A stretch of 59,109 nt of DNA from Octopus bimaculoides. Its lineage: Eukaryota. Made by a program: the position numbers and the translations under genes. Every line of letters begins with the position of its first letter. Positions within the stretch are counted from its first letter, which is position 1. Below the pieces are notes generated by a model. It was given only the letters and a program-made list of their open reading frames with translations, was not told the DNA's origin and did not search any database. The stretch spans positions 10,184,708 through 10,243,816 of the forward strand of contig NC_069008.1 in assembly GCF_001194135.2 (NCBI RefSeq), written 5' to 3'. Positions 3,519 to 57,085 of this stretch are shown here, piece by piece.

Positions 3519-4806
3519 AGGGCTCCCCCTTGAGTGCAGCAATGCAAAAACAGAATAATTGGAGCAGGCACAAGAAAGAGTAAGGATGGCAACTGATAGC
3601 AACCAACAAGATATGGTACAATAATGTGACAAGTCAAATAGAAAAATAATTGCAAGAAATATAAATGGGCATGCACAAAAATTTGACAAAATGTTCAATG
3701 GCAGAGTATAGGAACTGTCCAGTAACACAAGAAAGCAATTGTCTGTCACAGGAAAACACAGGAAAACAGGATTGTCAGATATAAATAGTTTTAATGAGTT
3801 TTTTGGGCCAGTGCACAGTGTGGCCTGTCCTGGTGATATAGGGTTTGTTTGTGTTAGGTTGTGGTGACAAAGGTGGAGGTGTAGGTGATGGTGTGGTCAA
3901 AGGTGCATGTGAGGGTGGTTGTAAAGGATCAAAGGTGGGCATGTTTAGGATGTCATCGAAGGGTGTGGACACCTCAAAATGTGCCCTTTTAAGTCTGTCG
4001 ACCGACACGGTCTTTGCCCGCCCATTGATGGCGAGACTAAAAGTTTTGGGTGTGCACGATAGCACACGAAATGGTCCCTTATAAGGAGAAACGAGAGGTC
4101 CTCTGACAGAATCATCCCGAACAAAAACATGAGTCCATTTGTCAATATCCGGTGGGACGTGAGAGGGAATAGACTGGTCACGTGGATGCAAGGGTGGAAG
4201 ACTTGAGAAATACAAGTGAAGTCTGGTAACATATGACGTTGGATCAGTTGTCTGGTGCTAACATTGTGCCAGGGTGGTACCATAAAGGAGTTCAGCTGAA
4301 GAGAAACCTAAGTCTGCTTTAACACAGTGCAACAACCAAGAAGAACGATAGGCAGGAATTCTGTCCAAGACTGTGGATCAGAAGTGGTGCGTAGAACGGC
4401 CTTCAGTTGCCTGTGAAAATGTTCGACCATCCCATTGGAGGTTGGGTTGTAGCTGGTCGTACAAATGTGATGAACGCTTAGGATTCGTGACAATTCACGA
4501 AATAGAGAAGCCTCGAACTGGTGTCCGCGATAAGTGGTTATTTTAGCTGGGACACCAAAGCGAGCAATCCAGTTAGAAATGAAAGCTCGAGCAACAGACT
4601 CAGCGGAAATGTCCACTATTGGAATGGTCTCTGGCCAACGAGAGAATCAATTGATGCATGTCAATATGTAAGAGAAACCGCGACGGACAGGCCATGGTCC
4701 AACCAGATCAATGTGGACATGGCGAAAGCGAGTCTCCAGAGGAGAAAACTGTCCAAGAGGAGCGCGAATATGCCTGTGGATTTTAGAACGCTGGCATTTT
4801 ACACAA

Positions 4807-12270: not shown

Positions 12271-14310
12271 CATCGTCATCATCATCATCATTGTTTAATG
12301 TCTGCTTTCCATGTATGCATGGGTTGGATGGTTTGACTGAAGACTTGCAAGCCAGGAGGCTGCACTGGGCTCCAATCTGATCTGGCAAGGTTTCTTCAGC
12401 TGGATGCCCTTCTTAACACCAAGTACTCCAAGAGTGTAGTGGGTGCTTTTTATGTACCACCAGCATAGGAGCCAGTTAGGTGGCACTGGCATCAACCATG
12501 CTCAAATGGTGCTTTTTACGTGCCATGGGCACAGAAGCCAGCTAGGCGGCACTGGCATCACTCATGCTTAAATGGTGCTTTGTACATGCCTCCGGCACAG
12601 GTGCCAGTCAGGCAACACTGGCATCAGCCATGACTACAATTTCCCTTGACTCAACAGGTCTTCTTAAGCACTACATATTGCCCAACAATTGAAGGGTACT
12701 TTTTAATGGGCCAGTTATGCGACACTGGCATTGGCCACAGCCACGATGTCACTTAAGCACAACATATCTCCAGAGGTCTCAGTCACTTGTCATTGCCTCT
12801 GTAAGGCCCAATGTTCAAAGGCCATGCATCACCACTTTGTCCCATGTCTCCCTGGGTCTACCTCTTCCACAGGTTCCGTCTACTGTTAGGGTGTGACACT
12901 TCTTCACACAGCTGTCCTCATCCATACATAACACATGACCAGCTCAGTCATCTCTCTTGCACACCACATCTGATGCTTCTTATGTCCAACTTTTCTTTCA
13001 GGGCACTTATACTCTGTCAAGTATGCACACTGACATTACACACCCAGCGGAGAATACTAGCTTCATTTCTTTCAAGCCTACACATGTCCTCAGCAGTCAC
13101 AGCCCATGTTTCACTGCTATGTAGCATGGCTGTTTGCGCATATGCATCATTCAGTTTACCTTTCACTCTGAGCGAAAGGCTCTTTGTTACCAGCAGAGCT
13201 AGGATCTCTCTGAACTATGTCCAGGCTATTCTTATTCTAGCAGCTACACTTTCAGAGCATCCACCCCCACTACTGATTTGGTCACTTAGGTAATGGAAGC
13301 TATCAACTACTTCTAGTTTTTCCCCTGGCGTGTGATGGAATCTGTTTTCTGTACATCTTTGGTGTTTATTACCCCTGTGCATCTGCCATACACAAAAACT
13401 ATCTTCCTAGTTAACCTTCCTTTGATATTGTCCATAACTTACACTGGATACGTCTTAAGGAGTGCCTTTTCTACAAATCGAGCTGGGCTATCTACCTGAA
13501 GGGATTTGTGATTTGTCTGCCTTCCTACTTACTAAGACTTTGGTTTTTGCTACATTGACTCTAAGGCCCTTCGATTCTAATCCTTGCTTCCACACCTGAA
13601 ACTTCTCTAGTTCTGGTAGTGACTCAGCTATTAGAGCAAGGTCATCAGCATAGAGGGGCAGCCTCTCTTCAATCCCTCTGTTATTGCTTGGAGGACTATG
13701 ATGAATTAGAGGGGGCTGAGGACTGATCCTTGGTGAGCCCCTACTTCTACCCAGAATTCATCACTAGTTGCCAATGCTCACCTTACTGACAGCATCCCTG
13801 TACAGGGCTTGTACAGCTCTCACCCACCACTCACCTATCCCTAGTTTCTGCACTTACCACCAGATAAGGGATCAGGGGACTCTGTCAAAAGCTTTTTCCG
13901 TGTCAACAAAAGCCAAGTACAGAGGTTTATCTTTGGCTAGGAATTTCTCTTGCAGTTGCCTTACCAGAAATATAGCATCAGTAGTGCTTCTCCCTGGCAC
14001 AAACCCAAACTGCATCTCATCTAAACTAATTCTCTCCCTAATTAGTTGGGTTATGACCCTCTCTATGACTATCATCACCTGATCCAACAATTTGATACCT
14101 CTGTAATTATTGCTATCTAATGCATCACCTTTACCTTTGTAGCAATTGATTATGGCAATTGACTATGGTGCTGCTACACCAGTCATTGGGTATGATGCCT
14201 TCATGTATCAACTGGTTGACTAGACTATAGCCCACACCACCAGATATTTTAAACCTCTCAGCAGTGATTCCTGATGGGCTGGGGGCTTTCCTTGTCTTCA
14301 TCAATAATAT
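12271..14310 (-). mobile_element. RTE-clade LINE, 5'-truncated, (GAT)n tail
   Basis: DEMQFGFVPGRSTTDAIFLVRQLQEK..AFVDTEKAFDRVP, YADD region; (CAT)n at 12271-12290 is the 3' tail. Confidence 0.9.
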
Positions 14311-16050: not shown

Positions 16051-16342
16051 AAATAAGAGCTAAAAGATGATCCATTGTAAAAGCTTTATTATGACCTATG
16101 ATCATTTCGATGCAATATCCAGACCAATTCATGCATATTATAAAATATGGAATATTGTATCTCTTCAGGGTCAGATTAATTCATAGCAGACAGATAGTAC
16201 TGTCTGCTATGAATTAATCTGACCCTGAAGAGATACAATATTCCATATTTTATAATATGCATGAATTGGTCTGGATATTGCATCGAAATGATCATAGGTC
16301 ATAATAAAGCTTTTACAATGGATCATCTTTTAGCTCTTATTT
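16051..16342. repeat. Perfect 142-bp inverted repeat with 8-nt spacer
   Basis: 16051-16192 is the exact reverse complement of 16201-16342; spacer gatagtac; followed by a long (TA)n. Confidence 0.97.
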
Positions 16343-18660: not shown

Positions 18661-18904
18661 TGATCTCACCTGTTTCCAAGCAAAGTAATGTTTCCTATGA
18701 CCAGACATGTTTCCACAGAAGATTGGAAATGAAGAACACTGCTTGCAAGACATTAACATTCTAATTAGTTATATTCAATATATATATTCTTTAAATATTT
18801 AAATTGAAATGTTTTTGCTTTTCTTTTTAGAAAGGAAAATTACATCGAAATGTTACCTGAATGACTTAAAATTAAAAAGAATTCTTTTAATTCTTCTGTT
18901 GCAG

Positions 18905-19301
18905 CAGCTACCAAATGCCAAAGTGGCAGAGCACCTAGTGCAAAGTCTACAGGAATGTTCCAGTATGCAGGAAATAGTGCAGACAGTCTACAAATGTGGG
19001 AATGAGATCTCCGAAAGCAAGATACGTGAATTTGAGATTGAATTTGAACGCCTGAATAGCAAAATTGATCACTGGAGATCTCAGTATGGACTGTTGGCAT
19101 TAAACCTGGAGGAAAGCAAGACCCTTACCGACCGACTAAGTGTGCTCATTGGCAAGTATGAATCAAACAACACAGCACTCCAGCTGGCCATCAACTACTC
19201 TGATCAGGCAATTGAGGCATGTGAGGTGTTGTGTGCTGTTATGGAGAGTGAACATGGTTTCAATCTGGCTAACTTTCACGCCAGTGGTCTTAGTGGTTTT
19301 G
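18905..19301 (+). CDS. MCC: MCC / USHBP1-family coiled-coil protein, internal exon
   Basis: QLPNAKVAEHLVQSLQECSSMQEIVQTVY..ESKIREFEIEFERLNSKID..GKYESNNTALQLAINYSDQAIEA closely matches recalled human MCC VAEHLAHSLQDCSNIQEI..ESKIREFEVETERLNSRIE..GKYESNATALRLALQYSEQCIEA; acceptor ttgcag|cag, donor g|gtaagt (phase 1). Confidence 0.93.
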
Positions 19302-19551
19302 GTAAGTTTTGTTCTGTTGATTCTGCTATTGTGGCTGTTGTTTAAACCCAGGTCAGTCCTGCTCCAGCAGTTGTATATTCAAATGATATGTGGGGGGTTC
19401 TCTGGGATTGATCATGTAATGTAGACAGTTATGATGACTACAACAAGGGTTAACAATCTATTAAAGCTGTTCATGATTTTTTCAGTCCATGAAGAAATAG
19501 TTTTGATCTGTTTGTATGACTACTTTAAGGTTTACATATATATATATATGT

Positions 19552-19945: not shown

Positions 19946-20452
19946 ATATAATCACTATCATTAACATCATCATCATTATTTAACATCTGTTTCCCACGCT
20001 GACATATGTTGGACAGTTTGACAGGCACCAGCAGATCAGAAGACTGCACCAAGCTCTACTGTCTGTTTTCGCATGGTTTCTATGGCTGGATACACTTCCT
20101 AACACCAACCACTTTAAAGAGTGTGAATGTCTACAGTAGCAGTGAGGGCAACCAATAGCTTATAAGAGAGGATTCCTCAACAAAGGGGTATTGAAGGAGG
20201 TGGCTTTGTTCCAAGTGAGGAAAAGTTAAAGTATGAACCTAGAGAAAGAAATAGCTGTCTTGCAATAAAGGAGATACATGGCCGCCTCAGTTGGAGGGTG
20301 TAAGAGAGAGAAAAAGAGGATCAAAACAGTAAAGATGTGATGGGGGTCACACTTATGTTACAGGGAAGTGCATGTAAGTGAAGTGTAACCAAGGATAGGA
20401 TAGGTTGAGTGGATAGGTAACTTTACAAGATTATTAAAGGTGCAATATATAG

Positions 20453-20483
<31 letters not shown>

Positions 20484-20555
20484 GCATATATATATATATA
20501 TATACATGTGCATATATATATATATATACATGTGCATATATATATNNNNNNNNNN

Positions 20556-21014
20556 TCAAACCTTCGCAAACATATACTATTTCAGTGAAACACATTCACT
20601 GATTACAAAAATTAGAAATAATACATTTCTAAATCTCTTAGAGAGACTTACGCAGTAGTGATGTGATAAAGTAGTTGTATACTGCCAACTTAACGTGACA
20701 GTCCCAATAAGGGAATATACGGGAATATACTACTGCTATTTAGCTCTAGGAAGCTGGACCGCTTCCTGTCGGCGTTGACACATTTCCTGTGTCCTTATGT
20801 TTGCGAGGGAGAGACAAACTCCTCCACACAGCCTAGCCTGCATTCAGGGACATGTTTCTGAGTCTTTGCTTGTCATCAGCCTGAAGTAGCATGACCAGCT
20901 GGTTGAAAAGGTCTGTCAAACCTTCGCAAACATATACTATTTCAGTGAAACACATTCACTGATTACAAAAATTAGAAATAATACATTTCTAAATCTCTCA
21001 GAGAGACTTAAGCA
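20556..21014 (-). repeat. 360-bp tandem unit (about 1.3 copies visible) carrying a hammerhead ribozyme; retrozyme/pLTR-like
   Basis: 20556-20650 repeats at 20916-21010 (1 mismatch in 95); HHR inside the unit; array cut by the N-gap at 20546-20555. Confidence 0.75.
20843..20885 (-). ncRNA. Minimal type-I hammerhead ribozyme with intact catalytic core
   Basis: Minus strand: ttcagg-CTGATGA-caagcaaagactca-GAAA-C-AT-GTC-cctgaa: 6-bp stem I, palindromic stem III (ACATGT), GUC triplet; stem II weakened. Confidence 0.8.
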
Positions 21015-21119
21015 GAGAGACTTAATACATTTAGAGAGACTTAATGCATTTAGAGAGACTTAATACATTTAGAGAGACTTAATACATTTAGAGAGACTTA
21101 ATTCATTTAGAGAGACTTT
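20998..21119. repeat. 19-bp minisatellite (agagagacttaatacattt)n, about 6 copies
   Basis: Direct tandem repeats visible; the unit joins two motifs present in the adjacent 360-bp repeat. Confidence 0.9.
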
Positions 21120-21289
21120 GAAATCCTAAAAATGCACCCCAAATGACCTAGACTTATGGATGTAAAGAATTGGATAACGAATGAGAAAGTAGAGGTATCC
21201 ATATTGCAGAAAGTAAGGTACATGGAAAGAAAGCTGCTTCATTGTGAAAAGCATCATCTCTAATGTTTGGGCAGACTGCACACTTCAAT

Positions 21290-23600
21290 ATATGTTAAGT
21301 GAAGCCGACAATGCTTCTGGGTAAACTATGTTTTGCGTAAGCCCAGTGTTGGTAGAATAAATATACAAGTCATCTGCATTGCTAACTCAAGAGCATGCGA
21401 CATACAGTTGTCCATGAAAAAAAGCAGCGTAGATGTAAATTGAGGCCCACAATTTTTAAAGTTTGACCCTGAACTTTGTTGATCATCATAGCAAAGCACA
21501 ATTGCACTGGGAACTGGAGGCGCTTGAAATGAAATGGCATATTTGAGGGAATAAGGGGCATGCATGGAATGTATGCAAGCTCTCCTTCATGGCAACCAGC
21601 AATAATGGTTGCTTCTAGGACATGACTTGTCATTGTAGTTATAATCAATCTTGTACCATTGCAAAGTCATGATGGTTCCAAATTCCTCAAGTGCATGATA
21701 GATGCACCTTTCTTTAGGAACAACGTATGTGGTGGCAGTCCTGTGGGTTGTAGAGAGTTGAGAAATTCAACTGGATTCTCCACAGCGGCATGTTCGTTAT
21801 TAGTATCAATGGAGACAAACGTTGAAGCATGTCCAGTTAGAATGTGGAGGAGTTCATGGTTTACTTTATCAACGCTTTCATTCCGAGGTGCTAAAATAGC
21901 TCTCTCTGCAAACCATGCTATGTTTTTGAAATTGTCTTGCAATGTGGGAAATACCTTTTCTTTAAGCTCAGCCAATATAGGCACCATGTGCCCACATTAC
22001 AGTACATGCTACATTCAAAAGTAAGGTGCCATTTCCAATTTGTAGAAGTTGATCAGAGAATTCCTCTGCTAAGGGGTCGTTGTAGAGATGATCTCGCATA
22101 TTCTTGCTTAAGACTTTAGACATGCATAGATCTCATCAGCTCATGCACCCCGTGGTATGACTGGTAATATTTGATGGAAATCCCCTACAAGTACAACATT
22201 TAAGCCCCCATAATGGCAGTACTGTTTCTAATATCCCTTACTGGCCTATCTAGGGCTTCTAGTGCACCATGGAGTTCCATCATGCATTCATCCCAGACAA
22301 TAAGTGTAGTTTGTTAGCAGAACTTCCACTGTCAGTGATCATTTTGAAATACTGCACATTTGGGCATCCGTTGAAGTCAAATTGAAAGGTAATTTGAACA
22401 TTGAGTGAGCTGTTCGTCCACCTGTTAACAAAGTTGCCGCTATCCCTGATGATGTGACAGCAATCACTATGTTTCCCATCAACCTTATTTTTGCCACAAG
22501 TAGGTTAAGTAGAAACATTTTCCCCATTCCTCCTGGTGCATCAGTGAAGAAAAGATGTCCTTCTCCTTGCAATGTAGACACTACTATTTCATTGTAAACA
22601 GACCTTTGCTCAGCTTGCAATAATGGTTTACTTTCATCAAGTTGCCTTTTCAGGGCATCCAAGTTGTATGCTCTTTCTCGAATGACTTCTCTTGAAAGGC
22701 CGTGATGTTCAGCTGAAGGTGTTGGAATGCCGTAGTTGGATAAGCTTTTGGCCCCAATGGAATTAAGCATGTCTTCTAAATGCAATAATGCTTCGGTGTA
22801 TATAACCTCCAAGTAGGAGATACTTAGCCCATGCAACCGTCCAGCTCCATGAAGGATGTCATCAGATAAGCTGTCTTTGTGGCTTTCCCAAAGTTGTAGT
22901 GGATTCAGTAAATCGCAATGGCACAACATGATGGCAAAGAATCATCTTAGTTGGTAAGCTGTGCATGCGGTTGCTACGTCAGAAAGTGCTAAACTCTAGT
23001 GACTGCCATCTTTGAGAAGACCTTGTAGTTGGCAGGCTTGTTGAAATGTTTCGCAAATCAAGGAGTTTATCATTTTAAGGTCTTTGAATGACATTGGTCC
23101 AGCAACTTTGTGGAGGAGCATCCGGAGACAGTAGCATTCAAAGTTTTTGGGGTGGACTATATAAACTCGACCTGGAGCATTACTTTTTTTTATGTGTGGC
23201 TACTCTTCGATGGTTACACCAAGCTTTCTCCTCTTCCACTTCTTAACATGGTTATTCCAGGCGTAATACTTCAGTACGTCTGAGTAGAAGATAGTCACAG
23301 CAAATGCATCACATCTACACAGGTCAAAGAATGCTGTGAAAGTCATCACATCTGAAAGGCCAAAGACAGCCATGTCAGACCCTTTGTTTATATATTTGCA
23401 TGCATACTTGATGGAGAGAACAGAATTGCAAAATTCCACATCAACGTGTGCCTTAAAATCTCGTAGCAATAGAAGACTATATGGAATGATCCATCTGTTG
23501 TCTACAACAACTGGACTTTCTTGTGGTCGAAGAATGAAATGGAATCCACCGTCTCCCAGTTTGCATCGTTTGTATGTTGGATATCCATCATGTCCAGTGT
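21290..23600 (-). mobile_element. Degenerate Helitron Rep/Pif1-helicase
   Basis: GYPTYKR..GG, DNRWIIPYS..AHVDVEFCNSVLSIKYACKYINKGSD (Rep); DAPGGMGKMF, SSGIAATLLTGGRTAHSMFKLP, RAILAPRNESV, LPPHTLFLKKGASIMHLRNL, QFPVQLCFAMMINKVQGQTL (helicase). Confidence 0.92.
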
Positions 23601-35759: not shown

Positions 35760-38550
35760 GAGTGAGTGGATCTGAGTGGAGTAGTAATCAGGTTTTAGGA
35801 TGGGTTGTTATGGAGAGGAGTTTTGGAGAAATTTTTATTGATTAAATTTGGGATTTAGAATTTATTTATGCATATAGAGCTTTATAAGCAAGTGTGTATG
35901 TTTGCGTGTGTCCCTTTTGATGTGTTAGTAGTTTAGTTATATTTTGACTAAGTGGATTTAATCTTTTACTTTGACAATGTAAATGTCAAAGATACAGAGT
36001 CCAGTATTTAAAACATCAATAAGCTGATGTGTAAACTATTTTGTAATGGAATTTTTTTAGGGGTTTGCAAAGAACATAAGTAAATCCTGTTTTAGCTGGT
36101 CAATTTATTTACTTGTTATTGTTGAGCATTTCCTATTTTTATTAGGACAGTGTTGGTTATTAGTCAGGCATGCTATGGTGTTGTTAGTATAGAAAATTGT
36201 TTCTCTTGTGCTTTCATCATCATCCAGTGTTCTAAATCAAGTTTTGTGCCCATTAACGGGGGGTGGTCAGATCTACCTCAATGCCATAGAAACCACCCTC
36301 AAACCATCTCACCATTTTGCCTGGTTTTGGGCATCCTCCTTTTTCAAACCAACCCTCCCAATCTCCTCCTCCACCTTTTTCTCTGTCTACCTCACTTTCA
36401 CACTCCATTTACCTCAAATGCAATCACCCTCCTCAGAACAAGCTCTTCATCCCTCCTCAATACATGCCCATACCACTTCACTCCATTCGCCCTTGCCAGC
36501 TGATACACCAATTCCTCCAATCCCAGCATTCCCATCAAATCCTCAGTGCTCCACTGGTTCCACCAGCCCTCCAGCTCCTTTCTCACATCTTCCACAAACA
36601 AACTCTCTCGCCAGTCTTGGGATCACCTTCATTTTCATATATCTACCATGAATCCATTTCCCACATCTCATACATAACACTGCATTTGCCATTACCCTCC
36701 TCCCACATACACCACATGGATCCACCTTACTCACCAACACTTCTCCTTCCACCCCACTCACCATCACCTTTGTCTTCCCGCAGTTTACCTTCAAACCCTT
36801 GCTTTCAAATGCCTCCTTACATTTCCCAAACTCTCCCCTCAATCCCTCCATTGTCTCACTCATCAGAACAAGCTCATCCACATACAGTATCTCCATTATC
36901 AATCCCTCTCTCGCACTCTCCATCACCACATCAGCCACTATCACAAACACCAACTTTCACTGCAAACTCCTCCGACAGCTCTCATCCAATTCTAACTCTT
37001 GTATTTACCCCCTCATACAAACTCATCACTAACCTCGATGTTCATGAAAGGATTTGGTTAGGTGTAGAGGTTGATGATCTGTATGTTTCTCTCGAGGGGC
37101 TCATTGAGCAATTTCATTAATATATGAAGATTTTAACCCATGTGGAGGCAGTATTTGTGAGCTATGTGCTTATAAATATTTCTCTCATTCTGTTTCAGAA
37201 GTAGTATTTTATAATGTGTTATTTTGGGCCCCTGGATATATGCACTATAAAAGGGGTGTATATATTCATGTATATAAAAAATATATATTAAAAAATTGAA
37301 AATATGACAATGTAAAATTTAAGAAAGAAAAGGAAGAAAATAATTAAAAGAAGGAAAAGAGTGTGTATGTAGGTAAACTTTTAATTTGTAGAGTACTAGT
37401 TTAGTGTAAAGATGTGAAAATGTATTTTTATTGAATATTATTATGGTGGTAGTTTATAGGGGAGTGGTGTTGGTGAGAAATTAATGTGTAAAGCCATCAG
37501 AAAAAAATTATTGGTTTGAAATGTTTTAGTATTTTAAAGATTTTGTGCTTCCATAGAAACTAGCTCAGAGTTTGGTCCATGAATATTAGAATGTGGTAGG
37601 ATTCATTAGTACAAAATTGGCATGTGAATGTACTTTCTAATTTGGATGGGGTATTTTTTAAATTTTAATTTGGATAGGGAGTGCCATATCATTTTTCCTG
37701 TTTGGGTTGCATGTGTGTTGTATTGTGTCTTAGACTGGTTTGCTATCAATCCTATATATGGTATTGTGTTTGTGGTTACTGTTGCACTTCATACAAATTT
37801 TTTTGAGAGACAGTTTCCTTCTAGAGGGCAGGATGAAGGCATTCTAAATTTGCAATTGTTATTATGTATGTTTTAGGTATTCTCTTTTAGATAATTTTTG
37901 GTGGTTGTAATTGGCTACAATTTTTTTTTAATAACAATTTTTTGCTGTGTTTGTTTATTAGTTTGCAGTATTTGTGATTGGGGCTGGAAGTGTTTTTGCA
38001 AGATTTTGAAAAATAATTTAGCTATTGATGTGGAGATTTGTATGTTGAAAGGGGGATTAAACCTGATGATTTCTTTTGTCTATTCTTACATTTTTTATTA
38101 ATTGTGTGAGGTTTGTTGTTTATATATTTTGTTTTTCCTCTTGTAACTGCTGTTGTTTGGAGCTTTGTTATATGGGATTGCTATTTTGTTTTGTAGTTTT
38201 TCATTTTAAGATAAAGAGGAAATCCTAGAAATTCTTTACTGGGTTTTGATAATGTTTTTGGGATGGCTGGATAATTTTTCATTATCTTGTAAGTCGATGA
38301 TAATGTCTAGAAAGTTGACTGACTTTAGTTATGTTTCCACTGTAATAGAGAAACCCATGTCTTTGAAGTTCCTTCTTAAATTTATACGACTGTGTACTTC
38401 TCCTAAGGAACCACATCACGCAAAAAAAAAACTGATAAATACAAAGTTGCTTACAATACCATAACCCCAAATTTAATCAATAGAAATTGCTCCAAAACTT
38501 CTCCATAACATCCCACCCTAAGATTTAATTACCACTCCACTCAAAACCAC
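35760..38550 (-). mobile_element. Penelope-like element (RT C-terminus + GIY-YIG), with inverted terminal repeats, interrupted by an RTE
   Basis: Minus-strand relics KSVNFLDIIIDL..SSHP..IIK, PPFNIQISTSIAKLFFKILQKHF, SCPLEGNCLSK; about 35765-35865 is inverted relative to about 38460-38550. Confidence 0.65.
36213..37035 (-). mobile_element. RTE-like LINE 3' part with a PHD-like Cys/His cluster
   Basis: EILYVDELVL..GLKVNCGKTKVM..DPCGVCG..LCMRCGKWIH..FVCGRC; WYGHVLRR; (GAT)n tail at 36213. Confidence 0.82.
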
Positions 38551-43687: not shown

Positions 43688-46566
43688 CATCATCATCATC
43701 ATCATTTAACGTCCGTTTTCCATGCTGGTATGGGTTGGAAGCCAGGAGGCTGCACCAGGCTCCAATCTGATCTGGCAGTGTTTCTACAGCTGGATACCCT
43801 TCCTAACACCAACCACTTTGATAGTGTAGTGGGTGCTTTTTAAGTGCCACCATCGCCGGGGCCAATGGGGACTGGCATCGACCATGTTTATATCGTGCTT
43901 TTATGTGCCACCCGCACGGGAGCCAGAAGAGGCTGGCNNNNNNNNNNNNNNNNNNNNNNNNNNNNNNNNNNNNNNNNNNNNNNNNNNNNNNNNNNNNNNN
44001 NNNNNNNNNNNNNNNNNNNNNNNNNNNNNNNNNNNNNNNNTCATGTGCCACTGGTGCACAGGAGCCAGTTGGGGTGAGGGGCTGGCATCAACCACATTTG
44101 GATGGTGCTTTTTACGTACCACTGGCATGGGGAGCCAGACAGGCAGCGCTGGTATCAGCCGCAACTACAATTTCCATTTAATTGTGGTTTGATTTGATTT
44201 TCATGTTAATGTACTTGACTCAATAGGTCTCCTCAAGCATGGCATGTTGCCCTACGATCCAAAAGGTACTTTTGCGCAACACTGGCATAGGCTACAGCTG
44301 CGATCTCACTTTATTCATCACGTCTTCTCAGTCATAGCCTATCTCCAGAGGTCTCAGTCTTTTGTCATTGCTTTTGTGAGGCTCAGCATTTGAAGGTCAT
44401 GCTTCACCACATCCCATGTCTTCCTATGTCTCCTTCTACCATGGGTTCATTCCACTGTTTGGGCATGGCATTTCTTCACACATCTCACCTCATCCATCCT
44501 TAGTACATGACCATACTAGCGCAGACGTCTCTTTTGCACGCCGCATCCAATGCTTCTTATGTCCCACATTTCTCTCAGGGTACTTACATTCTGTCATGTA
44601 TGCACATTGATATTACACATCCAGTAGATCATGCTAGCTTCATTTCTTTTGAGCCTACGCATGCCATCAACAGTCACAGCCGTGAAGCATGGCAGTTCAC
44701 ACACATGCATCATACAATCTACCTTTCACTCTGTGTGAAAGACCCTTTGTCGTCAGTAGGGGTAGAAGCTTTCTAAACTTTGCCCAGGCTATTTCTAGTT
44801 GTAACACTTTCTGAGCAGCCCTCCCCCCACTACAGACACCTAAGTAGTAGAAGCTATGGACTACTTCTAGTTTCTCACCCTGGCATGTGATGGAATCTGT
44901 TTTTTTGAGCATCTGTGGTGATTATTGCTCCTGTGCATCTGCTGCACATGAAAGTTATTTTCACAGTTAATCTTCCTTTGTACCTTTTATCTGTCCATAG
45001 CTTACACTGGGTACATCTTATGGAGTTTCTACCTACACCTTTTCTACAGATTGAGCAGGGCCGTCTACCTGAAGTGGTGTGTGATGTGTTTGCCTTCCTA
45101 CTTACTAGGACTTTGGTTTTTGTGACATTGACTAAGGCACTTCGATTCTAAATCTTGCTTCCACACCTGAAATTTCTTCTCTAGTTCCGGTAGTGATTCT
45201 GCTATGAAGGCAAGGTCATCCACATAGAGGAGCTCCCAGGGTCAACCTGTTTTGAATTCCTCTGTTATTGCCTGGAGGATTATGATGAATAAGAGGGAGC
45301 TGAGGGCTGATCCTTGGTGGACCTCTACATATACCCGGAATTCTTCACTCATTGCCAACCCTAACCTTATTAATGGCACCCCTGTATAAGGCCTGTACAG
45401 CCCTTATTAACCATTCGTCAATCCCTAGTTTCCGCATCGCCCACCAGATAAAGGATAGGAGGACCCAGTCAAAGGCTTTCTCCAAGTCCACAAAAGCCAA
45501 GTACAGAGGTTTATCTTTGGCTAGGTATTTCTCCTGCAGTTGCCGTACCAGGAATATAGCACCAGTGGTGCTTCTACCTGGGACAAAACCAAACTGCATC
45601 TCATCTAAGCATACTCTCTCCCTAATTAGTTGGGCTGTGACCTTCATCACCTGATCCAGCAGATTGATACCGCTGTAGTTATTTCTATCTAAGGCGTCAT
45701 CTTTACCCTTGTAATAGTGACTATGGCGCTGCTACGCCAGTTATTGGGTATAACTTCACTATGAACTACCTGGTTTACAATATGGGTGACTAAACCATAA
45801 CAATGCCACCAGATATTTTAAGCATCTCAGCAGTGATTCCTGATGGGCTCAGCAGTGATTCCTGGCTTCATACCCTTAATTGCTTTATCTACCAGGGTGC
45901 TGTCTATTCGGATAGCTGGTCCCTCTTCTGGGTCAACATTTGGCAGGCTTTCCTCCTCCTATTCATTCTCCACATTCAGCAGTCTTTCATAAGTGCATCT
46001 CCAAGCCTCTTTCTTTCCAGAATCATTAAATGCAAGGGCACCATCATCCATGCGGACACATTTTTCTCCTGTGACATCACAATTTTCTCTCACACATTGT
46101 CTTGCAATCTGAAATACTTCAGTTCTTTGGTCCTCACGTTGCTGGACATTGGCAAAATACTTATCTGCTTCTCTCTTGGCTATGTATACCTGTCACCCAG
46201 CCCGTTTCTTTGCTCTAATGGCTTTATCTACTGTATTATTCCACCAACACATTACTCTAGGTCTGGAAGGAACTTTGTACCATCCACAAAATTGGTTTGT
46301 AGCATTTAGTAAGCTGTCGCGTAGGAATTTCCAGTTACCCTCTATGTACATGCATCACAGAACTCCATTAGCCTGGTTCCCTCTTCATTTCGGCAACCAA
46401 TACCATGAGCCCCCGTGCACACCAGTGAAGATACCGGATTGCCGTCCAACATGCCCATTAAAATCTCCAGCCACAAAGATGAGGTCATTGCCACTCATCT
46501 TTGAGGTAGCTTGTAGGGGGGTATCATAAAAACGGTCTTTCTGATCATTTGGTAGGCCTGCTTAAG
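43688..46566 (-). mobile_element. RTE LINE from 3' (GAT)n tail to the APE end
   Basis: catcatcatcatttaacgtcc tail; RT motifs at 45345-45650; AGDFNGHVG at about 46450. Confidence 0.9.
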
Positions 46567-49260: not shown

Positions 49261-50699
49261 GATTACTCGCTTGTAATCTGAGAGAACTGTATACTGCATA
49301 CATTATCATCATCATCGCACCAGCCTCCAATCTGATCTGGCAATGTTTCTACGGGTGGATGCCCTTCCTCACGCCAACCACTCCAAGAGTGTAGTGCGCG
49401 CTGTTTAAGTGCCATCAGCATGGGAGCCAGTCAGGGGACACTAGCAACGTTTCTGCATTGACCACCAGTTAAGGGATCAGGGGACCCTGTCAAAGCTTTC
49501 TCCAAGCCAAGAAAAGCCAAGTGCAGAGGTTTATTTTGAATAGATATTTCTCCTGCGGTTGCCTTACCAGAAATATAACATCAGTGGTGCTTTTGCCTCG
49601 CACAAAACCAAACTGCATTTCATCTAGGTTAACTCTCTCCCTAATCGGTTGGGCTATGACCCTCTCTGTAACTTTCATCACCTGATCCAATAATTTGATA
49701 CCCCTGTAGTTATTTCTTTTACCTTTGTAGCAGCTGACTATGGTGCTGTTACACCAGTNNNNNNNNNNNNNNNNNNNNNNNNNNNNNNNNNNNNNNNNNN
49801 NNNNNNNNNNNNNNNNNNNNNNNNNNNNNNNNNNNNNNNNNNNNNNNNNNNNNNNNNNNNNNNNNNNNNNNNNNNNNNNNNNNNNNNNNNNNNNNNNNNN
49901 NNNNNNNNNNNNNNNNNNNNNNNNNNNNNNNNNNNNNNNNNNNNNNNNNNNNNNNNNNNNNNNNNNNNNNNNNNNNNNNNNNNNNNNNNNNNNNNNNNNN
50001 NNNNNNNNNNNNNNNNNNNNNNNNNNNNNNNNNNNNNNNNNNNNNNNNNNNNNNNNNNNNNNNNNNNNNNNNNNNNNNNNNNNNNNNNNNNNNNNNNNNN
50101 NNNNNNNNNNNNNNNNNNNNNNNNNNNNNNNNNNNNNNNNNNNNNNNNNNNNNNNNNNNNNNNNNNNNNNNNNNNNNNNNNNNNNNNNNNNNNNNNNNNN
50201 NNNNNNNNNNNNNNNNNNNNNNNNNNNNNNNNNNNNNNNNNNNNNNNNNNNNNNNNNNNNNNNNNNNNNNNNNNNNNNNNNNNNNNNNNNNNNNNNNNNN
50301 NNNNNNNNNNNNNNNNNNNNNNNNNNNNNNNNNNNNNNNNNNNNNNNNNNNNNNNNNNNNNNNNNNNNNNNNNNNNNNNNNNNNNNNNNNNNNNNNNNNN
50401 NNNNNNNNNNNNNNNNNNNNNNNNNNNNNNNNNNNNNNNNNNNNNNNNNNNNNNNNNNNNNNNNNNNNNNNNNNNNNNNNNNNNNNNNNNNNNNNNNNNN
50501 NNNNNNNNNNNNNNNNNNNNNNNNNNNNNNNNNNNNNNNNNNNNNNNNNNNNNNNNNNNNNNNNNNNNNNNNNNNNNNNNNNNNNNNNNNNNNNNNNNNN
50601 NNNNNNNNNNNNNNNNNNNNNNNNNNNNNNNNNNNNNNNNNNNNNNNNNNNNNNNNNNNNNNNNNNNNNNNNNNNNNNNNNNNAAATGAATAGTGGATT

Positions 50700-51252
50700 T
50701 TGCTAAAATGAAAACTATCTAAAAGTGTCAAATAAAGACTAGAAATCACGAAATTCGCATTTTCCAGTTTTGTTGGTTTTTCATGGTTATTTGCAATATT
50801 TTAGGAGTTTGAGTTTTGTGAAAATGGTTGTGAATTCCGTGAACTCTGATAAATATAGCGTTTTCATCAACCATCTAGCCAATATTAACCCAATAGACTT
50901 CAAAATGAAAAGTGGTTTTTGCAAAAATGTTAACTCTCTAAAAGTGTCAAAAAACGACTGCAAAACACGAAATTCGCATTTTCAAGTTTTATTGGTTCTT
51001 CATTGTTTGCAAAATTTCGTGAGTTCCAATTTTGTGAAAATAGTTGTGACTTCGGTGAACTCTTTGATAAATATAACGTTTTCATCAACCATCTAGCCAA
51101 TATTAATCCAATAGACTTCAAAATGAAAAGTGGTTTTTGCAAAAATGTTAACTCTCTAAAAGTGTCAAAAAACGACTGCAAAACAGTTTCAGTTTTGTGA
51201 AAAAGGTTGTGACTTCAGTGAACTCTTTGATAAATATAATGTTCTCATCAAC
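50700..51252. repeat. About 218-bp tandem satellite-like unit, about 2.5 copies
   Basis: agtgtc anchor at 50724, 50943, 51161 (spacing 219, 218). Confidence 0.85.
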
Positions 51253-52140: not shown

Positions 52141-53189
52141 AAATCTATTATAACAATGAGCTTGTTTCTAAGTTTGTCCAAAATCACACAATGAAAGAGT
52201 AGCAGAGTTAAGTAAGAGTAAAAAACGAGATNNNNNNNNNNNNNNNNNNNNNNNNNNNNNNNNNNNNNNNNNNNNNNNNNNNNNNNNNNNNNNNNNNNNN
52301 NNNNNNNNNNNNNNNNNNNNNNNNNNNNNNNNNNNNNNNNNNNNNNNNNNNNNNNNNNNNNNNNNNNNNNNNNNNNNNNNNNNNNNNNNNNNNNNNNNNN
52401 NNNNNNNNNNNNNNNNNNNNNNNNNNNNNNNNNNNNNNNNNNNNNNNNNNNNNNNNNNNNNNNNNNNNNNNNNNNNNNNNNNNNNNNNNNNNNNNNNNNN
52501 NNNNNNNNNNNNNNNNNNNNNNNNNNNNNNNNNNNNNNNNNNNNNNNNNNNNNNNNNNNNNNNNNNNNNNNNNNNNNNNNNNNNNNNNNNNNNNNNNNNN
52601 NNNNNNNNNNNNNNNNNNNNNNNNNNNNNNNNNNNNNNNNNNNNNNNNNNNNNNNNNNNNNNNNNNNNNNNNNNNNNNNNNNNNNNNNNNNNNNNNNNNN
52701 NNNNNNNNNNNNNNNNNNNNNNNNNNNNNNNNNNNNNNNNNNNNNNNNNNNNNNNNNNNNNNNNNNNNNNNNNNNNNNNNNNNNNNNNNNNNNNNNNNNN
52801 NNNNNNNNNNNNNNNNNNNNNNNNNNNNNNNNNNNNNNNNNNNNNNNNNNNNNNNNNNNNNNNNNNNNNNNNNNNNNNNNNNNNNNNNNNNNNNNNNNNN
52901 NNNNNNNNNNNNNNNNNNNNNNNNNNNNNNNNNNNNNNNNNNNNNNNNNNNNNNNNNNNNNNNNNNNNNNNNNNNNGATTTTTGGCAATTTTCCAGAACC
53001 TCTGTATCCAAAAATAGGGGTTTTTGGCAAAAAAAATTTTTTAAATAAACAAATTTGGGAGAAAATGGGGTGGGGGACAGGCGGAAGTCTTTCCTCTTGT
53101 AAGTGTGTGTGAAGAGACAGAGAGAGTAATGTTGCTGGTATGTGTGTATGTGTGAAAGAGAGAGAGATAACTGAAATTTTTTCCAAAGA

Positions 53190-53800
53190 ATTCTAGGTAT
53201 TACTCTATTATCAATTCGCACACATTTAGGATTGGTTTTTTCCAACACAAAAAATCTCTTACAAATTATCTCCTCACATAATATTAGCCTGTTCAATAAG
53301 AATACATTTACTAATACTAACATTAATTTAGCTAATATCATCCATGCCCCTAGAAATATTAATAACAAGGTTATTGTCTTTGAAGTCAATTCCAACAGAA
53401 TTAAGTTTATGTCAAGTAATTCTAAGATGAAAAACTCTATATACCAGTGTAAAATAACTTCAGGTGCCGATGTCTTTTTTTATACAGGTAGTTCTTCATC
53501 TCAGTTATCTAAAAGAATTTCTAATCATTACTCTACATTTAGGGATAGGAATAAATGTAACAGTACAGGGCTTAGTAAATTAATTTGGTATCTAAAAGAC
53601 CATAATAAACAATTTAATTTAGATTGGTTGATTTTCTCCATTTTGTTCTCTTATGATAAAGGCAAGGAATTTTGTCTTCTCTGTAATTGTGAACTATTTT
53701 TTATTCTTTTTCTAAAAATCCCCTTGTAAACACGGTTATAGAGTGTGCTTATCAATGTAAACATGGGTAGAAACACACCTTTAGTTCATATAAGTGATAT
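53190..53800 (+). mobile_element. Penelope-like element, GIY-YIG endonuclease fragment
   Basis: SIYQCKIT..YTGSSSSQLSKRISNHYSTFR..NSTGLSKLIWYLK..W..CLLCNCE is the PLE-type GIY-YIG C-terminal domain. Confidence 0.8.
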
Positions 53801-53821
53801 CTACCCTAACCCTAACCCTAA

Positions 53822-55440
53822 CAAGGGACCTTAGTTCACTAGAAGTGAACTAAGGTAACACCCCTTATTTTTTGAGCACCATCCGGAGTATTCGAGCGGT
53901 TCCAAGCAGTGCTGTTTTCAGCAAGTGCTCTATCCTTATTGCAGTCCTTATTTGTTTCATGTATGTCTCAAGATTTTTACTCACTGTTCCAAGGGCTCTG
54001 ACAATTATTGGTACCACTACCACTTTTTTCATCGACCACAACTGCTTAACCTCCCAAGCTAACCTGTCATATCTACCGACTTTTCTTTCTTCCTTATCAC
54101 ATACCTTGTCGGCTGGGCATGCTATATCTATGATTCAGCATCGTTTGATTTCTTTCTCAATTAACACTGTCTGGCTTCCTATTTTCTGTCTCATGGTCAC
54201 ACTGAATCATAAAATCCCATAGGATCTTTGCATTATCATTTTTGATGAAGCCTTCAGGTTTGTTCGTACCTCTTTTTTGTTCTTTCAAGTCCATACTTGT
54301 TGCAAAGTGTCCAGTGGACAATCCTTGCTATATTGTCATTATGTCTCTTATATTCTTTCTGGGCTAGTGGTGTTCATTGACTATTTGACCATTTTGTCCA
54401 CAGATTCTGCACTTATCACTTTCTGATGTGTTGTCTATTCTGTATTTGATGTAATTCGTTCTTAGTGCTTGCTCTTGGGCAGCACAGATTAGAGCCCCTG
54501 TTTCGGGTTTTAAATCCCTTTTAGTCATCTTCAACATCTCTATGAAATTGTCCATGCATTCTTTTTTTCATCCACCTATTTTCAGTTTCATTCTCAAATG
54601 CTTGTATAGTGCTTTATCTTTGCAATCTTCAATCCTACACAAGCCTGACCTTTTTACTTCCAATGATAGTGGTCCTGTGGCATTTTTACATACCATGCTA
54701 TATTGTTTTCTTCTGCTCTAACGCTGTGTTTGCATCCAATCAGTCCTCTTGCCCCTCTTTTTCTTGGTACATACAGTCTGTCTGTGTCCCTTTTTGGGTG
54801 GAGCATCCCATATCTGGTCAGCAACTTTGTCTTTCTGTCTAAACTGTTTAGTTCATCTACTGTCCATGCGATTACCCTTGCTCCATATCTAAGGAGTGAA
54901 ACTGCCCAGGTGTTGATAGATTCAATTGTATTCCATCTGTTTAATTTTGACTTAAGGATCAGTCTTAGTCTGTGCAAGTATTCCACCTTAAATTTTTCTG
55001 TCATTTCTTTCTCCATCAATTTATTCATTTCCAATATCCCCAAGTACTTATAACCCGTCTCTTCTATCTGCTTCATAACCTCTCCCAACAGTATCGCTAG
55101 CCCGTCCATACATTTGATTTTTGCCTCTCTTCAAGACCACACTTTTTCAGTCCAAACTCCATTCTGATATCAGTACTGAAAGTATACACTGTATCAACGA
55201 GGAAACTGACTTGGGATTCATCTTCACCATAAAGTTTGAGGTCATCCATGAATAACAAATGGTTGAATTTTTGTTGGTGGCTTTTGAATACATACCCAGC
55301 CTTTGCTTCCCACAGAATCAGTTTTAGTGGTATTATGCACAGTACAAAGATCAGTGGGGATAGACAGTCCCCTTGGAAGATGTCTATTGTCTCTAAACTT
55401 CTTCCATATGCTGTCAGTTCCATCCTCCACTTCGCCATAC
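53822..55440 (-). mobile_element. R4/Dong-like non-LTR element 3' half (RT, CCHC, restriction-like endonuclease)
   Basis: IFQGDCLSPL, HLLFMDDLKLY, YKYLGILE, AAQEQALRTNY..CRICG, KPD..IIDIACP (PD..D RLE motif), KTALLGTARIL; 3' end abuts (CCCTAA)3. Confidence 0.85.
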
Positions 55441-55446
55441 TAACCC

Positions 55447-57085
55447 TCAATATACTATCATAATGTACACTGACATTGGATGTTCAAAAGAGCATACCAC
55501 CTTCATTCCTCTCTGGTCTTCTTTGTGTCCTCTGCATTTCACTACCATGTAGCATTGCTTTTTGTACACAAGCATCATACAATATTCCTTTCACTCAGAG
55601 AGAAAAAGACCTTTGGTTGCCAACAGAGGTAAAAGCTCTCTATTTTCTGTATCCTATTCTTATTCCAGCAATTATACTTTCAGAACAGCCTCTTCTTCTG
55701 CTAATTAGGTCACCTAGGTAACAGAAATTATTTACAGCCTTTAGAGAGCTTCTAGGGCATTTGAGAAAATCAATTTCTTGCATATCTTTATGACTCCTGT
55801 GCGTTTTCAACATACAAACATTACTTCCTCCATTAACTATCCACTGCACCTCTTGTGTGTCCATAGCTTGCACTGGGTACGCGAATGGAATTCCTGCCTA
55901 TACCTTTCCTACATATCAAGCAGGGCCATTCACCTGAAGTGGGTACAGTCCTGTCTGTTTTCTTGCTTACCTTAGAACCTTGGTCTTTGCTAAGTTAACT
56001 TTAAGGCCCTTCAATTCTAGGTTTTGCTTCCACACCTGGAATTGATTTTCTATTTCTATTACAGATTCTGCTATGATAACAAGATTTCCCATGGGCAGCC
56101 AGTCTTAAACTTTTCTGTTATGACCAGGAGAATGATGTACTCATAGCTAGCTCTTATCTTATTAACAGCAACCCTACATATGGCTTGTACTGCTTTCACA
56201 AGCCATTTGTCTACCCCTAGCCTCCTCAGACACCACCATGTCACAGAGTGAGGTACTCTGTTGAAGGCTTTCTCCAGCTCAACAAAAACTGAGTACAATG
56301 GTTTATACTTCTCTTGTTACTTCTTTTGCAGTTGCCTGACCATGATAAAACATCAATAGTGCTTCTCTTCAGCACAAAGCCAAACTGCATTTCATCTAGG
56401 TTAATACTATTTCTAATTAATTGGGGTATTACTCTTCCAGGACCGGGTCATAACCTGGTCCAGTAATTTAATACTTTTATAATTACTTCTATTTAAGGCA
56501 GTGGTTCCTGAACATTTTCAGGGTGCCACATTCCTAGGGCCCCTACGACACTCACCATCAGAAATGTAGATAACTTTCTGAAGCAAGTTCAAAGCAACTG
56601 TATTTCACAAATAAAACTTAATCTAATTAACCATTTATTTTGTTATTTTTACATCCATCACCCCGCTTTTGGCCACCACATTGTTGCCCTACTTTTCTTC
56701 AACACCCCTCCTTATCTCCCCCTACTTCAGAGGAAAGTGACACTTGCTTTGGGAACCACTGATCTAAGGCATCTTCCTTACCCTTGAAACAGCTGACTCT
56801 AATGCTGCTACACCAGTCACTGGGGCTGAAACCTTCCTAAATAATCTGATCAACTATACAGGTGACAAGACTATATCTTACTCTACCAGATATTTTAAGC
56901 ATCGCAGCAATAACTCCAGATGGATCAGAGGCTTTCCCTGACTTCATGTTCTTTTCTCCCAATCATTCTCCACAATTAATACCTTTCATAGTAGCATTTC
57001 CATGCTCATTTCTTTTCAGAATTACTAAGTGCAAGCACACCATTATCCATATACTTCTCTCTCACAACATCTCAATTCCTCTGAC
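55447..57085 (-). mobile_element. Older RTE LINE fragment
   Basis: VELEKAFNRVP..WWCLRRLGVDKWLV, DEMQFG, NFCYLGDLIS. Confidence 0.8.

Follow-up and report, generated by a model that had tools for sequence, protein, structure and literature searches.

Does a short, hairpin-rich repeat beside an assembly gap in the octopus genome derive from a ribozyme-bearing retroelement, or does it only resemble one? We analysed a window of 59,109 nucleotides of Octopus bimaculoides DNA (assembly GCF_001194135.2, contig NC_069008.1, positions 10,184,708 to 10,243,816, forward strand; coordinates below are those of the window). An initial annotation had described a 360-nt repeated unit with a hammerhead core on the minus strand, and had proposed that it belongs to an Octopus retrozyme-like family. 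The window is AT-rich (38.9% GC) and repeat-rich, and it contains 15 runs of N, several of them exactly 10 N long. Our analysis suggests, with a probability of roughly 0.6, that the region represents a dead copy, a partial dimer of at least 1.27 units, of a non-coding, highly self-paired repeat of ~360 nt, of the type of animal non-LTR retrozymes, whose minus strand contains a type-I hammerhead of the canonical metazoan kind.

A type-I hammerhead motif on the minus strand

The minus strand from 20885 to 20843 reads UUCAGG CUGAUGA CAAGCAAAGACUCA GAAA CAUGUC/CCUGAA, where the slash marks the predicted cleavage site between 20849 and 20848. This type-I hammerhead motif was recovered by a descriptor scan, by direct reading of the sequence and by alignment with the Rfam family Hammerhead_HH9. 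Its parts are the 5′ strand of helix I (20885-20880), the core CUGAUGA (20879-20873), the region of helix II and loop 2 with the arms CAAG and CUCA and the loop CAAAGA (20872-20859), GAAA (20858-20855), helix III (CAUG) with U16.1 and C17 (20854-20849), and the 3′ strand of helix I (20848-20843). The conserved core, consisting of C3 U4 G5 A6 N7 G8 A9, G12 A13 A14, the A15.1-U16.1 pair and H17, is complete and has the correct order and spacing, with CUGAUGA, GAAA and GUC all present between 20879 and 20849. Helix I (UUCAGG/CCUGAA) contains six Watson-Crick pairs and is flush with the core. Helix III is minimal (GAAA-C-AU-G-UC), and two copies of its ACAUGU palindrome are predicted to pair into a duplex of 6 bp (-6.0 kcal/mol). 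The core, the 6-bp helix I, the ACAUGU helix III and the position of the cut all agree with the initial annotation.

Hammerhead_HH9 (RF02275) aligns with positions 20894 to 20826 of the minus strand over all 77 model positions, so that the UAC internal loop and the outer helix are covered, and scores 19.4 bits against a gathering threshold of 52. We note that 81 nt were submitted with laxer filters, and that the E value of 0.006 holds for that search, while the same score against the window and all families corresponds to an E value of about 4. The HH9 score by itself lacks significance. Rfam returned no match for the whole window at the gathering threshold, and no hammerhead match for an 801-nt segment at E ≤ 10. 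In the alignment, UAC is located directly 5′ of the 6-bp helix I, and an outer helix follows past loop 1. Among the loop positions relevant to the tertiary contact, UAC corresponds to UUAC in the HH9 consensus, and loop 1 has one U in place of UAC on its 3′ side. The 14 nt from CUGAUGA to GAAA fall into a 4+6+4 register, and loop 2 reads CAAAGA, compared with CAAAAA in the consensus.

These features can be weighed against chance. Among 400 dinucleotide-shuffled versions of the window, the core combined with GAAA, UH, a stem I of 6 bp or more and a short stem III occurred 0.0125 times per window, a figure for which helix II was not required. When the UAC beside helix I and the loop-2 pattern CAAANA were added, the analytic chance estimate was below 1e-6 per window. 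In canonical metazoan type-I hammerheads, helix I has 6 bp, helix II has 4 bp, and helix III has 1-2 bp with a small palindromic loop (PMC4209133). The octopus motif resembles HH9 and the type-I hammerheads of Schistosoma, newts and amniotes in its core, the UAC 5′ of a 6-bp helix I, the 4-bp register of helix II, the C-AAA-N-A loop and the outer helix. It differs from HH9 in its score, which stays at 19.4 of the 52 bits, in two of the four helix II pairs, which are A·C, and in a helix III cut down to C-AU-G. Because the alignment has the canonical layout and the chance estimate is below 1e-6, the sequence of the minus-strand motif is very probably that of a genuine homologue of canonical metazoan type-I hammerheads.

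The opposite view is that the motif is a hammerhead-like string that arose by chance in duplicated, palindrome-rich DNA beside the 3′ end of a Helitron, or captured by it. The 360-bp period would then be a DNA-level duplication, and the sequence would never have been a ribozyme. The absence of helix II and the sub-threshold Rfam score are compatible with this view, and a core-only motif occurs in 1-7% of shuffled windows. However, the match to the type-I layout continues well past the core, into UAC, the 6-bp helix I, the 4+6+4 register, CAAAGA and the palindromic mini helix III, and it is to this joint layout that the estimate below 1e-6 applies.

Defects in helix II and predicted activity

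Helix II of this copy (20872-20859, minus strand) forms two of its four pairs, A-U and G-C. In the HH9 alignment, the other two are the mismatches C10.1·A11.1 (20872/20859) and A10.2·C11.2 (20871/20860), and the 14-mer is predicted to have no structure (0.0 kcal/mol). The weakness of stem II, which had been suspected at first reading, is thus confirmed, with no predicted stability left. Both mismatched A's sit in CpA dinucleotides (TpG on the plus strand, at 20871-20872 and 20859-20860). The observed-to-expected ratio of CpG is 0.32 in the window and 0.51 in the unit, and that of TpG+CpA in the window is 1.31. When both A's were reverted to G, the helix II hairpin had a predicted energy of -2.6 kcal/mol, and the MFE fold of the domain held helices I and II. 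The reverted helix II would close with a C10.1-G11.1 pair, unlike the usual G-C.

Since both A·C mismatches lie in CpA and the window is depleted in CpG, the simplest explanation suggested by the sequence is that an ancestral CGAG/CUCG helix II was lost through two CpG-to-CpA transitions. The defects amount to two A·C mismatches, both of the transition type and both at CpA, which also argues against a chance origin of the motif. As A·C mismatches occupy the two positions of helix II closest to the core and only one hammerhead is assembled, the copy as found is predicted to be inactive.

Coleoid cephalopods show RNA editing on a massive scale, and an A opposite a C inside long double-stranded RNA is a favoured substrate of ADAR. 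A-to-I editing at the minus-strand A20871 and A20859 would produce I-C pairs and restore helix II, and the hammerhead could then be an editing-dependent, conditionally active ribozyme. We regard this as highly improbable, and CpG decay explains both mismatched A's more simply.

The repeat unit and its assembly

Two direct repeats, at 20556-20655 and 20916-21015, have an identity of 98%, with mismatches at 2 of 100 positions, and are spaced by 360 bp, which bears out the period proposed in the initial annotation. They delimit one complete unit of 360 nt (20556-20915, minus strand) and a second, partial copy, block A′ (20916-21015, minus strand). The assembled repeat thus contains at least 1.27 copies. 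This number is a lower bound, as the left copy is truncated by a 10-N assembly gap (20546-20555) and opens at the first base past it. TRF was silent on the repeat, for which it needs more than about 1.8 copies. The complete unit is non-coding and hairpin-rich, with a GC content of 41.7%, under 50%. Its longest ORF has 40 aa, consistent with the earlier remark that the unit has no ORF, and the three hairpins described before (tcagtgaa/ttcactga, 20582-20602; tagaaat/atttcta, 20613-20631; aggaagc/gcttcct, 20748-20767) are all present and appear in the predicted folds.

The gap raises the concern that the 360-bp period is an assembly artefact, with ~100 bp placed twice beside the 10-N run, in which case the unit would be single and not tandem. 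The first base of the left copy directly follows the gap, the gap adjoins a microsatellite, and exactly 10 N is a recurrent length among the 15 gaps of the window. However, the two copies are found together in uninterrupted sequence to the right of the gap, with 2 differences in 100 positions and dissimilar sequence on their right-hand sides. We therefore consider such a misplacement very unlikely, and the hammerhead itself would be unaffected by it.

Accepting the 360-bp period as real, we find only one hammerhead assembled in the repeat. One period away from it, the sequence is the tail of a Helitron on one side (~21245-21203) and the microsatellite on the other (~20525-20483). BLAST and nhmmer searches of the window with the unit and the hammerhead domain gave self-matches only. 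No copy of the unit was found by BLAST in ~20 kb of Octopus sinensis DNA (two near-identical records from the same assembly), and dispersed repeats of 67-86% identity are common to this DNA and the window. A six-frame translation of the unit, aimed at spurious ORFs on other copies, had no match among 5.8 billion predicted proteins, and a scan of metagenome contigs for the hammerhead pattern with any helix II gave 0 matches. The BLAST search for tandem copies that had been suggested along with the initial annotation thus yielded the partial copy A′ and no other in the window or the ~20 kb of O. sinensis DNA. The proposal of an Octopus retrozyme-like family is thus supported in part: the properties of the unit and the homology of its motif to type-I hammerheads fit a retrozyme-type element, whereas the locus contains one hammerhead in at least 1.27 units, and no further copy came from the window, the O. 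sinensis DNA or the indirect searches.

Both flanks of the repeat are themselves repetitive. Across the gap from the unit lies a (TA)n-rich microsatellite, (ATATATACATGTGC)n, at 20445-20545, which is a possible insertion target. Rfam matched mir-297, mir-466 and mir-3149 below threshold on either strand of this TA/TGCA microsatellite, and we discarded these matches as low-complexity artefacts. On the other flank, a 19-bp minisatellite (AGAGAGACTTAATACATTT, 5.5 copies, 21014-21118) is derived from the end of block A. The minisatellite shows that DNA-level slippage has taken place at this locus, and therefore the 360-bp duplication could equally share that origin, instead of going back to a multimeric or circular RNA that was reverse-transcribed.

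Fold of the unit

The minus-strand monomer, read from the cleavage site, has a predicted MFE of -122.5 kcal/mol (z -6.7), and none of 100 shuffled sequences was as stable. The circular fold of the unit has a predicted energy of -116.7 kcal/mol. In the predicted fold, helix I is extended, past a UAC/U internal loop, by an imperfect stem of ~45 bp that closes the whole unit, and the hammerhead is located at the tip of a branched rod. A long imperfect hairpin that extends helix I (20796-20934, minus strand; arms 20934-20898 and 20832-20796) was detected as an inverted repeat, in the MFE structures and as a reverse self-match. The plus strand of the unit has an MFE of -109.1 kcal/mol (z -4.56). 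A strand bias in G-U pairs was sought as RNA-level evidence, and none was found (8 versus 10). The fold therefore gives no evidence of selection on one RNA strand, and DNA-level palindromy could suffice to explain it.

A decayed Helitron adjoins the unit

The neighbour of the unit, which the initial annotation had overlooked along with the probable intronic, antisense position, is a decayed Helitron Rep/helicase ORF (21285-23679, minus strand), recognised by the Pfam domains PIF1 and Pif1_2B and by its homologues. The ORF contains 13 in-frame stops and at least one frameshift, and its stop codon is at 21287-21285. There are 299 homologues with Helitron_like_N and PIF1 domains, the best with 47-49% identity. 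Exact look-ups with fragments of this ORF, aimed at a second assembly that spans the gap, matched no record. The Helitron, with the Rep Y-motif and the PIF1 helicase, possibly reaches the gap at 23968. Downstream of its stop codon, the minisatellite starts after 167 nt and the unit after 270 nt.

Of the four closest Helitron relatives, three were compared, and in all three a CCGGG-type hairpin followed by CTAG/T is located 155-220 nt past the stop codon, in TA-rich targets. The conserved 3′ ends of these relatives lie at ~4640-4690 in L001, ~4050-4090 in L002 and ~6380-6400 in L003, in TA- or TAA-rich targets from unrelated samples. Downstream of the stop codon at 21285, no convincing terminus of a hairpin plus CTRR was recognised. 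The AGGAAGC...GCTTCCT hairpin followed by AGAGCTAA (~20767-20738) looks similar to a Helitron end, but it lies inside the repeat and no T comes after it. The unit is also unlikely to be the Helitron's own 3′ tail, since the relatives end at most 220 nt past the stop codon and no hairpin plus CTRR is found beyond the unit. Because the relatives terminate 155-220 nt past the stop codon and the unit starts at 270 nt, this comparison suggests that the unit probably lies outside the Helitron. The copies of the repeat diverge by 2%, and the decay of the Helitron ORF, estimated from its stop-codon count, is ~10-15%. The unit is probably a separate insertion, younger than the Helitron.

This neighbourhood also bears on the view that the hammerhead is a chance string. 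The region in question is 170-730 nt downstream of the Helitron ORF and on the same strand, Helitron-family elements with tandem repeats are known from molluscs (PMC7492417), the adjacent minisatellite comes from the same sequence, and the fold is without RNA-strand bias. The locus is similar to the mollusc Helitron/Helentron tandem repeats (PMC7492417) in that short tandem repeats and hairpins adjoin a Helitron-family element. It differs from them in that the unit begins past the expected terminus, which in related Helitrons is at most 220 nt from the stop codon, and in that it bears a hammerhead, which is no known Helitron feature. Weighing these observations together with the layout of the motif and its helix II defects, we consider a chance origin unlikely, and we continue with the reading of the unit as a retrozyme-type repeat.

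Comparison with animal retrozymes

Animal non-LTR retrozymes are 170-400 nt long (350-390 bp in mussels), have GC contents below 50% and are highly self-paired, and their hammerheads are of the canonical type, in contrast to the minimal, atypical ones of Penelope-like elements (PLEs) (Cervera & de la Pena 2020, PMC7229834). As the size, GC content, non-coding nature and self-pairing of the octopus unit match those of animal non-LTR retrozymes, we infer that it probably has its origin in an element of this type. Further similarities are the canonical helix sizes, a helix I that opens into the rest of the molecule, and a length of more than one unit. Unlike these retrozymes, the locus has a single hammerhead in at least 1.27 units, and its helix II is broken. 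Retrozymes have been counted as active when two consecutive units each contain a complete hammerhead (bioRxiv 10.64898/2026.07.22.740005), and with only one hammerhead and at least 1.27 units assembled, the octopus locus falls outside that definition. It is worth noting that Xenopus retrozymes are reportedly depleted from introns, whereas the octopus unit is apparently intronic and antisense.

In a working family, according to the published model, the tandem units would be transcribed, and each hammerhead would cut after C17, here between 20849 and 20848. Cutting would probably require two neighbouring hammerheads to pair with each other through a helix III of 6 bp, since within one copy helix III is merely an A-U and a C-G pair around a 2-nt loop in the ACAUGU palindrome. 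The resulting monomers of ~360 nt would be circularised by a host RNA ligase, and the circles may then be copied back into DNA by the machinery of Penelope-like elements.

Penelope-like elements and other carriers

The initial annotation had reported relics of PLEs in the same window, and this was not substantiated. A Pfam search of the window gave no match to a PLE domain, neither GIY-YIG nor a PLE family. Reverse-transcriptase relics with RVT_1 matches are found on the minus strand at 13875-14162, 30960-31406, 45348-45731, 55100-55483 and 36546-36956, one of them with a PHD finger, along with an integrase-core relic at 4311-4646 (minus strand). Judged by their motifs, these relics look LINE- or LTR-type, not Penelope-like. 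A 184-aa ORF at 53175-53726 (plus strand) has a GIY-YIG-like sequence pattern. It was not confirmed as the relic of a PLE endonuclease, as it belongs to no Pfam family and has two homologues only, a Logan protein without annotation and 'uncharacterized protein DDB_G0288805-like [Octopus sinensis]' (65% identity), the latter being the one named relative of any ORF in the window. In the literature, cephalopod PLEs are represented by remnants of Naiad only, which are without hammerheads.

A genuine hammerhead could also have been brought to this locus by a carrier other than a retrozyme, such as a Penelope-like pLTR (solo or partial), a SINE-like element with a hammerhead, or capture by a Helitron tail. 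PLE pLTRs contain hammerheads, and for the most part hammerheads are single, dispersed motifs (PMC4209133). Retrozymes and pLTRs are related according to the literature. The locus has a single hammerhead and no true array, and its A-B-A′ layout, in which direct repeats of 100 bp flank 260 bp, is reminiscent of a partial tandem or of a pLTR-like structure. In addition, the 3′ end of the Helitron was not located. Like the minimal hammerheads of PLE pLTRs, the octopus motif is type-I and would probably dimerise through helix III, and it is found in a retroelement-type repeat flanked by (TA)n-rich sequence. PLEs are reported to target (TA)n for insertion (PMC8557442), and the flank is compatible with PLE-type insertion and with a Helitron alike, as Helitrons also favour AT-rich targets.

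However, the dimensions of the helices are those of the canonical retrozyme type. In the minimal hammerheads of PLE pLTRs, helix I has 4-5 bp, helix II has 7-8 bp and helix III is missing, and an RT/GIY-YIG ORF flanks the repeat (PMC4209133), while in the octopus hammerhead, helix I has 6 bp, the register of helix II is 4 bp and helix III is present. No RT or GIY-YIG ORF adjoins the unit. In addition, the 360-nt unit closes on itself through the extension of helix I, as expected for a circular monomer. A non-retrozyme carrier is thus an unlikely explanation, and a decayed copy of a retrozyme-type repeat remains our preferred reading.

Genomic context and significance

Matches to the USHBP1/MCC PDZ-binding domain (PF10506) were found in two exon-like ORFs on the plus strand, at 18803-19342 (E 4.9e-19) and 27300-27503 (E 1.9e-9). 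These ORFs are probably exons of one MCC/USHBP1-like host gene. Since they are located on both sides of the unit, the unit is probably intronic and antisense to this gene.

Short tandem repeats that contain type-I hammerheads have been described before in many phyla of animals, bivalve molluscs among them. The octopus relic would therefore widen the known distribution, with no new kind of element involved, and we found no report of cephalopod hammerheads or retrozymes in the literature. The locus itself appears to be dead. If intact 360-nt arrays exist elsewhere in the genome, they would be predicted to give rise to abundant small circular RNAs in a lineage with extensive RNA editing, and the 360-nt sequence would be a direct probe for such RNAs.

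Other repeats were observed in the window. A 218-bp tandem repeat at 50684-51185 (2.3 copies, 88% identity) directly follows a 925-N gap, and the descriptor scan found no hammerhead in it. Two identical 82-nt segments are inverted relative to each other and 46 nt apart (16092-16173, minus strand; 16220-16301, plus strand). Their matches to a relaxed hammerhead descriptor were rejected as false positives, as they contain CUGAAGA and a 53-nt 'helix II'. A 66-bp repeat is present in 2.9 copies at 12442-12632, and a 39-bp repeat in 2.2 copies at 28753-28836, the latter being tRNA-/SINE-like (GTTCAAATTCCGCC). Interstitial telomere-like repeats are located at 33882-33946 (TTAGGG, 10.5 copies) and 53803-53822 (ACCCTA, 3.3 copies).
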